Positions 34,979 to 54,054 of a DNA stretch of 64,000 nt are shown piece after piece; the stretch's first letter is position 1; every line of letters begins with the position of its first letter. A program made the position numbers and the translations under genes. This DNA comes from Chara braunii (Eukaryota > Plantae > Charophyceae), in NCBI GenBank assembly GCA_003427395.1, contig BFEA01000001.1:9393741-9457740 (forward strand). The letters run 5' to 3'. The notes under the pieces were generated by a model. That model was not told the origin of the DNA. It saw only the letters and a program-made list of their open reading frames with translations, and did not search any database.

Positions 34979-37037
34979 TTTTATACTGTGAAGGATAGTA
35001 AATGTTAATCGATATGCTTGAAAAGTATGATAAAACCATCATAAAGACCCCTATAGCTTCACATAATGGCAATGAAATTGTAACACCCCCCAAATTTTGT
35101 GAGAAAGCGATGTAAAATTTGTGGTCAACAGGACCACAAAATACAAACAAATGTGGGGTAGCTCCCAAAAATTGAGTTAACAAAACATCAAAAGTCACCA
35201 AAATCATTGTGAAAATAAGAACTTCGATTTCGTTCAAAAAATATAAAATGTCCGTTTTGACGAAATTGCTGTTAATGGGGAGAAGATTATCCTGATAGGC
35301 GCCAACAGTGCTCAGCAAAGATTAGGGATAATCATGTTGTCTTTCAGGACTGGACGCGGAATGAACCCTCCTTCCCGTTGTGGCCCCCGTCTGATTCCCA
35401 GACCCCTTTCCTCCACATCCGCTCACCCTGGCTGAAGTACTGTCCTAAGCTCCTCTCCAAGTTCTAATCCCCCCTCCAACTTCCGCGGTGCCACCCAGGG
35501 AAGTCACAGCTCCCCTGTCTTGGTCACCCATGAGGTAGAGTTCCTTACTAGCTGAAGCTGGGTAGTGGCCCTGGTATCAGTGACGATCTTGTTTTCATGG
35601 GATGCTGGACCCACTCTCCAGCAGGTGTTGCTCCCCACCAATAGAACCCCCCCCCCCTAGATGGAGCTTACTGTTGGGGGGGGATCTTGTATCACCCCCA
35701 ACAGTGTCCCCCTGCCCTCCAATAGGGTGTGCAGTTGGCCTCGTCAGTCGGCCTCGCTTTCTTTTGTATTTTTTGAAAACCGCATGCTGTTCTGCGCAGC
35801 CTACGTCAAACCCTATCCCAGGCATGTCTGATTGTGTGTCTGGACACACATGACATGTAGAATGGTATCTGGCATCAGGACCAGGCCTCACTGGTACTGT
35901 GTTCTGCGCCAAGTTGCAATGAACCCAGCCCTTTTGATTGCCACTTCTGTAAGCCCTGCCAATGCTATGCCCACTCGCCCTTACGTATGTACCCAGAAAA
36001 CTGCGCTAAGTACGAGTTTGATCCTTGCTGGCAATGCTTAACCTCCTGCTGACAAGTCACTGAAAGTGTGTGATTCTATGAAAGTCGGAAAGCCACATAA
36101 CTTTTTCCTTTTGTCTTTTGTAACTGGGCCCAGCGGCCAATACTTGCATTGCAAATCTACAAGCCTGAATTTTCTGACTTGAATGACTTGGCTTCTTTTC
36201 TGACAAGACGCACACATGGGCGAGAAAGCAGCACAGGTGATCGCAACCCTGCACGACCGCGGGAAAACTTTTCCATAAAACGACATAAACAATTCGGGTT
36301 TTTCCGTGGTCGTGCATGTTGGGATCGCCGGTGTTGCTTTCTCACCCATTCTTTTCTGACAAGACACGCACACATGCACACATGCATACACACTGCTCAT
36401 GAAAAAAAAGAAAGAAAACGGAAATGCACGTACACACTCGAATACACCCACAGGATGCAACTGCACACAGGCATACACAGACACATGTTTTTGGCAGGTG
36501 ATTTCCGCTAGCAGCACCGCCCTACCAAGAAAAACAGAAGAAAATCTGCTAACAGGGCAAATTAATTTCACAAAAAGAAGGGGAAGATAACCTGCACACT
36601 AGAGCCGTTTGAAATCTTTTTTTCACAGTCCCCTTCCAAAGGGCACAAGATCATGAAATACGGGTGGATTTCAGATCCCCTCGACAATGAATACTGTCCA
36701 CTCTGCCCACCCACCACTGCTGCCTCCCCACAACCCCCCCTCCTCTTCCCCAGCCCCTGGACCCACCAAAGAGCCCTCATCTCATACTGGCATACACGCC
36801 CACCCGATAATCAGAACTACACTTCGACCCCCAGACTAAGCATTGGAACTGGCACGGATTGGGATTGGCATTGGGATTGGGATTGGGATTGGGATCGGGA
36901 TCATGAGCACCCAACCTTGCCACAGCATTCTACACAGTCAGCAGAGACATTGCTCAGTTCTTTGCAGAACCCCCAGATAAGACCACTGTGCGCTCTGAGC
37001 AGACCACGCCCCAGTCTTCATTTTCTCTTTTTTCACC

Positions 37038-37192
37038 TTAAAGAACCAGCACATGCCAGCTATCGGCCGCGAGCCCCTTTCGGAGGCCGCCTGCCGTCGA
37101 TTCACTTTACCTACGACGCTCAGCCTCCTAAATTTTCGGAGAGACTCAGAACAGGTTCTCCAGTTGCCTGGGGCCATGTACTGGTGGTTTAA
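37038..37192. mobile_element. ~150-bp MITE flanked by TTAA
   Basis: TTAA|AGAACCAGCACATG ... CATGTACTGGTGGT|TTAA; the same right end occurs at 2796-2810 and 46509-46523. Confidence 0.7.
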
Positions 37193-37436
37193 AACCTAGC
37201 TGCAGGGACAACAAGAGTACTTAGAACAGCTCCATGAAGACAGTATCAGGTGCTGGATGCTGCCCAAGGTGACTGAAGCAACCAGAGAAACTTGCACTGT
37301 ACTGAACGACCTCGTCAGAGACCAGAGTGTGGAATGAGATCGGGGCCAGTCCCTCGCTGTGCAAATTGGCCTCCACAGACAAATTGGCTTCTGAAACAGA
37401 TTTTGAGACACAACTGGTCAGAGGAAGACTGCAGTC

Positions 37437-37454
37437 GTCCTTCGGGACATCCAT

Positions 37455-50770: not shown

Positions 50771-51435
50771 CTATCCAGAGGCCTAGCTCAGTTGGTTAGG
50801 CACGCAAGTGGCATTCAGGAGGTTGTGGGTTCGAGCCCCACAACCGCCTGTGGCGCTCTTAGTGCCAACCAGCGGTGATAGTCGGCTTGATACCTCTGAT
50901 CGGTATCAGCGGGGTCCCTGGCGAACACAGGTGTGAGCATGAGTGTGATTGGGTTGTGTGTGGTGTGTGGGAGAGTGTTGGCCTTAGACACTCCTGATAT
51001 TCGGTTGGGGGTGGGGGATGATGAAAAGGGAGGTGCAGCTACTGACAAAATGCTCGGCCTTTGATTTAGCCGGACTCCGACCGGCGGCCCCACCCCATTC
51101 TTGACCACCGTGGTTGGGGCGGGGGGCAACATGCATCCCCTCTGATGGCTGGAGAGAGACAACAAAGCTATGTTTGCAGGGGTCCCCTGTATAAGCCTTA
51201 GGAGTAGCGGTAGGTAGGTAGTGAAGGTTTTTTTTTTTTTTTTTAAACCGGGCCCGGTGCCCAAGGCTTGATATTACCAATAATCAGATTGAGGCCGGGG
51301 TCCTCACAATCTACCCGAAGTGATCAAACCGAAAACTGCTGAGGTAGGTAGTGAAGGTGAATTGAAAGAATTTGAAAGATGATGAAAGATTTGAGAGAAG
51401 AAAAAAGATACAAAAAAAAAAGAAAAAAGACAAAG
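50771..51435 (+). mobile_element. tRNA-derived SINE (~530 bp without the nested insert)
   Basis: A-box TAGCTCAGTTGG and B-box GGTTCGAGCC at 50785-50838; A-rich tail; TSD AAAAAAGACAAAG on both sides. Confidence 0.85.
51228..51341 (-). mobile_element. Short LINE 3'-tail insertion inside the SINE
   Basis: Poly-T at 51228-51244; TSD AGGTAGGTAGTGAAGG at 51212-51227 and 51342-51357; similar to the 3' UTR at 8680-8745. Confidence 0.85.
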
Positions 51436-51477
51436 GGGAAGGGCATGCTCGGCGCCCGCCACCTAGAGATAGACCAC

Positions 51478-51937
51478 TGGATCCCCCGATTGGCATTTAG
51501 CAGAGTCTGCTGATGTTCATAGGGGAGGGGACCTGAGGGGAGGCANGATCCCCCGATTGGCATTTAGCAGAGTCTGCTGATGTTCATAGGGGAGGGGACC
51601 TGAGGGGAGGCACAGGGATTGGTCCTGTTGGCATGGTCCCTGATGCTTCCCCCGATTGGCACTTAGCAGAGTCTGCTGATGTTCATAGGGGAGGGGACCT
51701 GAGGGGAGGCACAGGGATTGGTCCTGTTGGCATGGTCCCTGATGCTACCGGCCCCCTAGCCGGTATCGCCCACCTGCAGGTCGGGAGCAGCCCCCGCATG
51801 TTCTCTCGTGAACACGGTTCTGGCTGCTACGGGGTTCCCCGTATGCCTACAATTAGGAGTAGTGGTAGGTAGGTAGTGTGAGGTGAAATTGAGAGAAGAA
51901 TATAGCTTTAAAAAAAAAAAAAGAAAAAAAAAAAAAA
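51478..51937 (+). mobile_element. SINE-related 3' fragment with three ~66-100-bp internal tandem repeats
   Basis: CCCCCGATTGGCA.TTAGCAGAGTCTGCTGATGTTCATAGGGGAGGGGACCTGAGGGGAGGCA x3; tail TTAGGAGTAG.GGTAGGTAGGTAGTG shared with the 50771 SINE; poly(A). Confidence 0.7.
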
Positions 51938-54054
51938 GAGAGAGACTACCATCTAATTTTCAAAGACTGGACAAACACAGCGAGAGATTGGGGTTTTTCA
52001 GAATAAGGGACAGGACACTGAGCCCGGGGCCTTCAGGGGAATTTGCTGGGTTAACAATCCTCACGGAACGACCAAAATCATACAGGGGGCTGCGGACACC
52101 TGGGAGTTCTTCCAAGTACATCAGTCGCTAGCTTCTAGGTGGAGGCTGAGTTGGATGCTAAGTAGGAGCCCTGTGATGGGTAGGGATAATTCGCAGCTCC
52201 AAGGGACAGGGTGCTCCACTATAGCCTCACTACTGGCCCGTATTGCTTTATTGAAGGGACGCTGGACCCGGTTTCCAGCAGGGTTCATTTTGGCTGGTTC
52301 AGAGAGGAAGGGAGACAGAAGGGGTAAGCAGGGAGAGTCGGTAGCTGTGCATTTTCTCCCTGCCTAACCTCACTCACTATAGGCTTACTAGCTCGCATTC
52401 ATTTTACATTCCAANCGCATGTCTGTTAACAAAACAATTNCAATGTACAGGGACGCTGGACCCGCTTTCCAGCAGGTGCTGCTCCCCACCAATAGATGGA
52501 GCCTCCCCGGCAATACTAGCGGTGCCTGCTCTTATCAGCACCCCTAGTATCTGCCTGGGCTGATTCTTTAAAAAAAAAAAAAAAAAAAAAAAGAACCCTC
52601 GTTCCCACTACGCCCTCCCTCGGACTTTCTAGACCCGTTCCCACCTCATGCCCTTTCCCTGGCAGAGATTCTGTCCTAAATAATAAAATACTTAGCCGAG
52701 TCTCTTTTACACCCACATGCATCTGAATACACATACACATACATAATTTATATGCTCACATGTGGAACTCCTCCCTGGAGCCCCCTGGGGAGAACTCCAC
52801 TAACATACATGTCTTTTTACATATCTGTTTCCTTTTTGCTGCTCAGTTAGCCCCCCTTTCTTTCGATTGGGGTAGTCAATGCTGGCAGTCTGAGTACTCT
52901 GAGCAATTTGTGTCTTTCATGTGTAATGGGACGCTGGACCCGGTTTCCAGCAGGTGCAGCTCCCCACCAATAGATGGAGCAGCTGGAGGCTATTACTAGC
53001 GGGGGATGCTTGTATCACCCCCTCTAGTAGACAGCTAAGGATTTTCAAAAAAAAAAAAAAAAAAAAAAAAGTGAATTATCTAAAAGAAAATGAAGGAAGA
53101 TAAAGGGAAGCTTGTACATACTTTACCATCATGGAAGCCAGGAAGTGGAAGTTTTTTTTTTGTCAGTTTAATGGACCACTCTCCATCTATTCGTGGGGAG
53201 CAACACCTTGAATAGGTAATCACCCACTCAAGCCCAACTGAAACTCTCAAACTCACCCACTCAAAACTCAATTGAGACTCTCAAACTCACCCACCTATTC
53301 AACACGATGAAGAGCTGTTGAATAGGTAATCACCCACTCAAACGCTACCAACACAGCCATATCCAAGGAAAGACCAGATCTCTCTACCAGGCCTCACACC
53401 CCTAATCCGGCTGGGTTACAGAGTTGGGCCAAATTGCTCCGTCTTTGTCTGTTTTGGTGCCTTTGTTATTTCTGATCCTATGGGTTATTTGGGGGCCCTG
53501 GAAGATGGTCTATGGGAGTCTTTTGATTCTGCTTTTTCTATTTCTGCTCTGCAATCTTTCTGAAGTCTCTTGGCCTTTCTGGTTCTATTGGCTATTTGGG
53601 TTTTTTTGTCTAGAGTTTCCGGCTTCTCTGGTTATATGGGCTATTTGGGGGCCCTGGAGGATGGTCCCCCTCACGGCTGTCTTGTTCTCTCTGGCTGGCC
53701 GACTGTTAGGCCTTCCCTGGGCCTTGATCGGGGGTCTTTTCCGCTGCTGATCATTAGCCGGTAGGGTGTCTCTAATTTTCGAGGTCCTGTCCCTTTCTAA
53801 GTCTGTTCGCTTCCTGACTATTTGCTACGTTAGGTGTTTTAGTTTTGGCTTTGATCTCTTGACCAACGGCTTATCTGGGCCTGTGATGAAGGCTCTTGGC
53901 TTTGATCTCCTGACCAACGGCTTATCTGGGCCTGTGATGAAGGCTCGTCGTTTCTAGAACTCTCCGGGGGGGGGTTTCTACGATCGTCCGATGTCTCTGT
54001 GTCAGGTCTGTGTTATATATTGAGAGCGCGCGTTCGTTTCTTCATCGTGACATA

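Follow-up and report, generated by a model that had tools for sequence, protein, structure and literature searches.

L1-type long interspersed nuclear elements (LINEs) are usually regarded as relaxed, needing only poly(A). A 64-kb stretch of the Chara braunii genome (the window) raises the question of how such elements mark their own RNA in a streptophyte alga, as many insertions there end in a hairpin, which we call hairpin 3, whose stem sequence changes from copy to copy while its loop hardly does. We find that hairpin 3 is a real, selected RNA fold. It is probably a cis-acting structure of the stringent LINE type, a 3' recognition hairpin for the reverse transcriptase of the element that carries it. 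In the Chara tail the apex is fixed while the stem varies freely in sequence yet always pairs, a textbook sign of recognition by a protein, and sister subfamilies without the hairpin in the same genome offer a natural comparison for the gain, swap or loss of specificity in an L1 tail.

The sample comprised the window and 11 further stretches (222 kb), 286.5 kb in all. Ten of the 11 are Chara braunii loci chosen via annotated retroelement proteins (labelled L001, L002 and so on); the eleventh, L003, is a stray contig from a metagenome scan that contains an exact 22-nucleotide (nt) word of the conserved tail module and yielded two more tails. This sample holds 15 complete copies of hairpin 3, 11 of family A and four of family B, together with one truncated copy. 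A first-pass annotation of the window had listed seven hairpins just 3' of a pseudoknot region; all seven are present where it placed them, with the arms as it wrote them (Table 1), and all 15 complete copies in the larger sample lie 3' of the tail module. Its proposed loop motif, TGCT(C/T)(T/G)TA(T/C)CA, describes six of the seven window copies, the remaining one, at 45149, lacking the G and reading U-CUCUUGC-CA.

The family A copies share one pairing register throughout. From the apex outward, it consists of a 7-nt loop (CUCUUAY), closing pairs G-C, U-A and usually C-G, one bulged nucleotide on the 5' side, a 4-bp upper stem that is mostly GGUG/CACC, a position that is mismatched in some copies and paired in others, and, outermost, a variable lower stem of 7-8 bp, for which there are at least five unrelated sequences. 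In family B the loop has 9 nt around the same core and tops an apex stem of 6-9 bp, and the whole is set in a three-tier rod whose base is only a few nucleotides short of the poly(A). In single-sequence folds the rod extends imperfectly into the spacer that follows the module and into the trailer, giving extended rods of about 20 bp with mismatches. The conserved unit is larger than the loop, taking in the 7-nt loop, two or three closing pairs, the bulge and the 4-bp upper stem, and free replacement of sequence is confined to the lower 8 bp. The formal pattern of a variable stem under a fixed loop, which the first-pass annotation had taken as typical of a protein-binding hairpin, thus holds in the larger sample, with the amendment that the conserved part exceeds the loop.

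The pairing was assessed in an ungapped, structure-blind MAFFT alignment of ten family A hairpins (alignment A1). MAFFT needed no gap, so the alignment is independent of structure. Standard pairs occupy 89.3% of its cells, compared with 73.2% after within-column shuffling of the 3' letters (0 of 500 shuffles), and sliding the 3' partner by 1-3 columns drops pairing to 28-57%. Both sides have changed in eight of the 15 pairs (1 of 500 shuffles), and the covariation score is 0.418 as against 0.133 in shuffles (0 of 500). The replacement of stem sequence with pairing kept, first proposed from the window copies, is therefore borne out in a larger sample. An alignment-free arm swap gave a concordant result: with its own 3' arm a hairpin folds at a mean of -22.0 kcal/mol, compared with -12.9 kcal/mol with the arms of other copies, none of 20000 permutations reached the observed sum, and cross-pairing is limited to close relatives. 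RNAalifold, given a structure-blind alignment of whole tails, recovers this hairpin and counts seven compensated pairs in it; the apex stem of family B has three such pairs. Folding z-scores against dinucleotide shuffles range from -1.3 to -4.7.

We also built a covariance model on the ten hairpins and searched the 286.5 kb on both strands. At E<0.03, all sense-strand matches lie 3' of a module, and the rest are reverse-strand reads of the same palindromic hairpins. The model recovers both family A copies outside its training set, at 35671 and 45889 (E values in Table 1). A weak match (E ~1) at 17257-17291 of L010 lies outside any tail and was set aside as a chance hairpin.

Retroposed copies are kin by descent, so some sharing of loops is expected without selection, and an inverted repeat that arose by a copying accident might simply hitch-hike with successful master copies. 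We consider such a neutral palindrome highly improbable. At least five unrelated lower stems in family A, and family B as well, keep the same register, bulge and apex; close relatives differ by compensated changes, such as GUG...CAC versus AUA...UAU; and the spacer and upstream untranslated region (UTR) have diverged to random identity. The gradient of conservation, taken as mean pairwise identity by segment in the same ten copies, makes the last point in numbers. Identity is lowest at the bulge (0.22) and ahead of the module (0.27 over 40 nt, the random level), intermediate in the lower stem arms (0.53-0.57) and highest in the loop with its closing pairs (0.81-0.88) and in the module (0.86). 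By this gradient, sequence is constrained at the apex, pairing alone in the lower stem, and neither in the neighbouring UTR.

The first-pass annotation had named the disappearance of loop conservation in a larger sample as grounds for rejecting its reading; in the doubled sample the conservation persists, though more loosely in family B. Among the 16 copies, position 1 of the heptaloop is always C, positions 2 and 5 are U in 15, position 6 is A in 15 and a purine in all 16, and positions 3, 4 and 7 vary. A suggested covariation of this loop with the AAUAGAU loop of the pseudoknot region found no support: AAUAGAU is nearly invariant, its complementarity to the hairpin loop amounts to only 3-4 nt, and the changes that it does show (L010_19862, L010_17574 and window copy w39880) come without matching changes in the hairpin loop.

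A 7-nt loop with U at position 2 and a purine at position 6 recalls a transfer RNA (tRNA) anticodon loop, as does a constant C at position 1 with variation at positions 3, 4 and 7. The apex might accordingly mimic a host RNA and recruit a tRNA-binding or other RNA-binding factor of the host instead of the protein encoded by the second open reading frame (ORF) of the element, ORF2p. However, the variable positions differ from the anticodon triplet, positions 3-5, and the stem is unlike the 5-bp anticodon stem. ARAGORN found nothing tRNA-like in the window and five loci, and Rfam gave no match to the hairpin: at gathering score it reported only U6 in the window, and the tails were without a match at E up to 5. 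Mimicry of this kind is, in our judgement, quite improbable.

An abundant, transcribed hairpin repeat with rods extending to some 20 bp might also be the precursor of a small RNA, microRNA-like or small interfering, acting on the elements or on host genes. Against this, the 15-bp core stem, with its bulge and mismatch, is shorter than plant microRNA precursors, it is the loop, not an arm, that is conserved, and no Rfam microRNA family matches the hairpin; we give a small-RNA role a very slim chance.

Hairpin 3 is not present in every tail. Family C runs from the module through a short trailer into poly(A), and its members are the window copy at 40678, two L002 copies, L007_17910, L010_19540 and L010_19730; one family C copy sits 630 nt downstream of an ORF2 C-terminus. 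The window copies at 39622 and 40677 had been read as polyadenylated ahead of the hairpin, and the hairpin as not strictly required. That view is strengthened by the existence of whole tail subfamilies without it. The copy at 40677 is indeed polyadenylated without a hairpin, but it belongs to a separate subfamily that ends soon after the module in several loci and is not a prematurely polyadenylated member of a hairpin-bearing one. The sister families make hairpin 3 a lineage-specific add-on, and the differing terminal add-ons (family A, family B, another hairpin, none) point to a specificity module that belongs to particular lineages, not to a universal requirement.

Two of the family C copies are themselves nested. 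At L010 19523-19860, two 5'-truncated inserts each have a poly-T run at the start and poly(A) at the end, and parts of the 3' UTR and module of the host LINE, 14 nt and about 85 nt long, are directly duplicated on their flanks. For the stretch of about 85 nt, either the target duplication was unusually long or a tandem duplication followed insertion.

The poly(A) of families A, B and C comes straight after a short U-rich trailer, frequently UUGUU or a close variant (for example, window 52551-52570 and 53031-53047, L007 17505-17521 on the minus strand and L010 17681-17695). No AAUAAA was seen in the trailers read. In copies with a readable end, the base of hairpin 3 lies 14-26 nt ahead of the poly(A). 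This fairly constant spacing, the common trailer that comes next and the need for another signal to define the end where AAUAAA is not seen all suit a hairpin that serves 3'-end formation or RNA stability, by displaying or spacing the cleavage and polyadenylation signals or as a shield against exonucleases, independently of reverse transcriptase. Against this, poly(A) follows a U-rich trailer of the same sort in families without the hairpin, and a conserved apex sequence would be superfluous in a mere spacer. As for stability, we compared hairpin 3 with the ENE-type stem-loop that clamps poly(A) and rejected the match, as hairpin 3 has only a single bulge and a single mismatch and no U-rich internal loop. 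We regard a role in 3'-end formation or stability as unlikely.

The module that precedes hairpin 3 helps to define where the conserved tail begins. Similarity between copies starts within a few nucleotides of the first base of the module and never extends upstream, with an exception in L010, where two copies of the same family share their upstream UTR. This sharing indicates that the 5' edge of the module is a conservation boundary inside family-specific 3' UTRs and not the end of an element. Hairpin 1 is the only part common to every tail type, including the tails linked to ORF2.

Hairpin 1 covaries among families, as GCUGGA/UCCAGC, GCUGGG/CCCAGC, GCCGGA/UCCGGC and GCCGGG/CCCGGC (sites at window 50229-50256, 40678-40705 and 52450-52477, L001 11587 and L002 15785). 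An extra copy of hairpin 1 alone occurs 50-190 nt ahead of a full module at window 52256-52282 and L007 21961-21984 (minus strand), and at L006 7355 and L007 22205 a unit with hairpin 1 alone is followed by related sequence. For the module itself, RNAalifold on alignment A3 (columns 3-39) pairs the first GGGA with the UCCC of GCUCCCC and not the proposed pseudoknot stems; no covariation favours either fold in this sample.

Which elements carry these tails? The window contains one ORF2, at 46797-50005, with RVT_1 and zf-RVT domains, and its translated fragment 49073-50008 is 68% identical to a Chara braunii protein. Both this ORF2 and its 68%-identical relative in L001 have hairpin 1 alone, 220-255 nt past the stop. 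ORF2 relatives combine RVT_1 with an APE endonuclease domain, as in plant L1. The first-pass annotation had likened the hairpins to those of L2-clade LINEs; by RVT_1 and zf-RVT, by APE in the relatives and by their poly(A) tails, the carriers classify as L1-type, not L2. A connection between ORF2 and hairpin 3 comes from L010, where a degenerate ORF2 C-terminus (a tblastn match to a Chara L1 protein, with a CxxC...HxxxC motif) is followed, once the two nested family C inserts are removed, by a 3' UTR, the module, hairpin 3 and an A-rich tail. Linkage of the hairpin 3 tail to an L1-type ORF2 in this locus is plausible.

Most copies are short, and both 5'-truncated LINEs and non-autonomous elements are possible; sequences upstream are unrelated between copies. 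A search for target-site duplications of the short copies (exact repeats of 9-16 nt, and 14-mers with at most two mismatches, within 3-4 kb upstream) gave nothing usable. Clear target duplications flank only two inserts. One is a twin-primed (5'-inverted) insertion at 45887-46171, with an 11-nt duplication, GTTTACTACTG, at 45887-45897 and 46161-46171, which landed immediately ahead of the module copy at 46171; the loop of the truncated hairpin 3 is cut at its junction. The other is a U6 small nuclear RNA pseudogene at 37437-37536 on the plus strand (93 bits), a processed copy cut about 25 nt before the normal 3' end, with an A-rich tail and a 13-nt direct repeat, GAAGA(C/G)TGCAGTC, at 37424-37436 and 37541-37553.

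Taken together, these observations lead us to favour a model in which hairpin 3 would act as the recognition hairpin of the element's own reverse transcriptase. In the Chara braunii L1-type subfamilies that carry it, the hairpin follows the conserved 53-nt module, falls within the final 40-80 nt of the 3' UTR and is separated from the poly(A) by the short U-rich trailer. The apex would be the part read by sequence, and the lower 8 bp, with their imperfect extension, would form a rod for which any pairing sequence suffices. The ORF2 protein would bind hairpin 3 along with the module and the poly(A), thereby picking its own transcript as template, and this binding would position the start of target-primed reverse transcription. 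Three marks of a stringent tail are present, namely the extreme 3' position, compensatory changes in the stem and conserved loop nucleotides, and from these we infer that binding by the ORF2 protein and a role in reverse transcription are the most likely function.

Several observations weigh against recognition by the element's own enzyme. Families without hairpin 3 have multiplied too, so some ORF2 lineages can do without it, and the U6 pseudogene indicates that some Chara LINE machinery copies non-cognate RNA that has no such tail. The hairpin at 35670 has no poly(A) within 700 nt, and that at 46239 is also far from the next one (Table 1). The loop of family B is looser, reading CAUUCAC in one copy. 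The ORF2-linked hairpin tail is a single case in a decayed element, in which the zf-RVT match is sub-threshold (E 0.087 on a 43-residue piece). Finally, no partner short interspersed nuclear element (SINE) was identified, and ARAGORN found no tRNA-like heads in the window and five loci.

Table 1 Hairpin 3 copies, tail modules and related tails in the window
Feature	Position	Strand	Details
Hairpin 3, family A variant	35670-35705	+	11-bp stem; 14-nt loop holding CUUGUAU-CA; covariance-model match, E 0.027, outside training set
Hairpin 3, family A	39780-39817	-	CAGCUUGA-type lower stem; loop CUCCUAC; A-rich tail starts 18 nt further 3'
Hairpin 3, family A	40885-40922	-	GUGCUAG-type lower stem; loop CUCUUAC; 3' trailer cut after 5 nt by assembly gap
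Family B terminal rod	45125-45196	+	Apex stem 45148-45155/45165-45172; 9-nt loop U-CUCUUGC-C; two outer stems; poly(A) from ~45197
Truncated hairpin 3 (eighth copy)	45898-45926	-	5' arm and loop only; covariance-model match, E 0.0046
Hairpin 3, family A	46239-46276	+	CCACUUGA-type lower stem; loop CUCUUAU; next poly(A) ~450 nt downstream
Hairpin 3, family A	52513-52550	+	AUACUAG-type lower stem; loop CUCUUAU; poly(A) from 20 nt further 3'
Hairpin 3, family A	52993-53030	+	UACUAG-type lower stem; loop CUUGUAU; poly(A) from 17 nt further 3'
53-nt tail module, example	52450-52503	+	Hairpin 1 and pseudoknot region; precedes every hairpin 3
Module copies ahead of other window hairpins	starts 35599 (+), 39881 (-), 40985 (-), 45072 (+), 45989 (-), 46171 (+), 52928 (+)		
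Family C tail, no hairpin 3	40678-40769	+	Module, short U-rich trailer, poly(A) running into gap
Family C-type copy	39623-39678	+	Polyadenylated after 29 nt
Hairpin-1-only tail	50229-50256	+	220 nt past stop of window ORF2
Different terminal hairpin	31830-31851	-	6-7 bp stem, loop UGCAAAUAGG; behind divergent module copy 31862-31916; sole example found

One hairpin in Table 1 borders an assembly gap (40770-40879). The hairpin at 40885 consists wholly of read sequence, with 5 nt between it and the right edge of the gap, and only its trailer and poly(A) are lost; the poly(A) to the left, at 40733-40769, is part of another copy, on the plus strand. No claim made here needs continuity across the gap.

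The window is rich in repeats, with the L1-type ORF2, a Ty3/gypsy pol fragment, a GIY-YIG ORF and 14 module copies of about 53 nt each, spread over 31.8-53.2 kb. A profile search of the fetched stretches found further module copies in L002, L003, L006, L007 and L010 and none in five other 21-kb loci. Tails are clustered and nested, with eight in 5 kb of L007 (17500-22210), eight in 3 kb of L010 (16780-20000) and the window cluster at 31800-53250; further insertions may be drawn to the A/T-rich tails. The Ty3/gypsy fragment (24227-25540, minus strand) encodes reverse transcriptase-RNase H and an integrase zinc finger, is split by a run of N at 25120-25354 and has more than 100 annotated Chara braunii paralogues, with identity up to 90%. 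The ORF at 43527-45188 (minus strand) encodes 553 amino acids, with a GIY-YIG nuclease domain near the N terminus (residues 119-201, E 2.5e-6). It may be a Penelope-like element of the permuted-domain type, which has been reported from the green lineage (PMC8557442).

Stringent LINE tails have been characterised experimentally, and the ORF2 protein of ZfL2 binds the stem generically and the loop specifically (Hayashi 2014, PMC4176376). In the L2 stem-loops of eel UnaL2 and zebrafish ZfL2-1 and ZfL2-2, the stem is read as shape and the loop by sequence, as we propose for the Chara hairpin; in both, the loop is lineage specific and the structure sits at the extreme 3' end (PMC4176376). The L2 stem-loops belong to another clade, however, end in short repeats and not in poly(A), and differ in their loop; UnaL2 is cited as having a pentaloop (Nomura 2006, as cited in PMC3472496). 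Protein binding was shown for the L2 stem-loops, whereas the compact Chara element of about 38 nt is a candidate partner for its ORF2 protein, with a function that we infer. SART1, of the R1 clade, is likewise described as combining a structured element in the 3' UTR with poly(A) (Osanai 2004, as cited in PMC3472496). By that account SART1 uses both, so poly(A) does not imply relaxed recognition. It is an insect element, telomere specific and of another clade, and the likeness is one of description.

The tails of plant and green-algal L1 are a closer precedent than the L2 clade. In a monocot L1 lineage the last 45 nt are conserved and form a hairpin whose stem changes in a compensatory way and whose loop keeps a UCU (Ohshima 2012, PMC3472496). 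Stringent L1 tails in green plants include LINE1-1_ZM with ZmSINE2/3 in maize and L1-1_CR with SINEX-3_CR in Chlamydomonas (PMC3472496). Like the Chara tails, those of maize and Chlamydomonas belong to the L1 clade, end in poly(A) and keep their last 45-80 nt conserved amid a diverged element. They also share compensatory stem changes and a few fixed loop nucleotides, the UCU of maize lying within the Chara CUCUUAY. By description, the Chara tail differs in being modular, with the hairpin as its third part, and in carrying that hairpin in only some subfamilies. A partner SINE is described in the cases of Ohshima, in contrast to Chara, where none was identified.

From such cases Ohshima proposed a stringent ancestor for the L1 of green plants and argued that a poly(A) tail need not mean relaxed recognition (PMC3472496). 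Our literature search found no description of Chara LINE tails. A tentative extension, to which we give somewhat less than an even chance, is that L1 in streptophyte algae uses stringent recognition of a modular kind, with a universal 53-nt module, exchangeable hairpins, an anticodon-like heptaloop read by a variable part of ORF2p and a further need for poly(A). If true, the Chara tails would provide a natural set of orthogonal tail/ORF2 pairs and would directly support, from the algal grade sister to land plants, a stringent ancestral green-plant L1 that was later relaxed. The kind of signal is already known, including from L1-clade LINEs of green plants; here it is found in a new host lineage, a streptophyte alga that stands between the monocot and Chlamydomonas cases.

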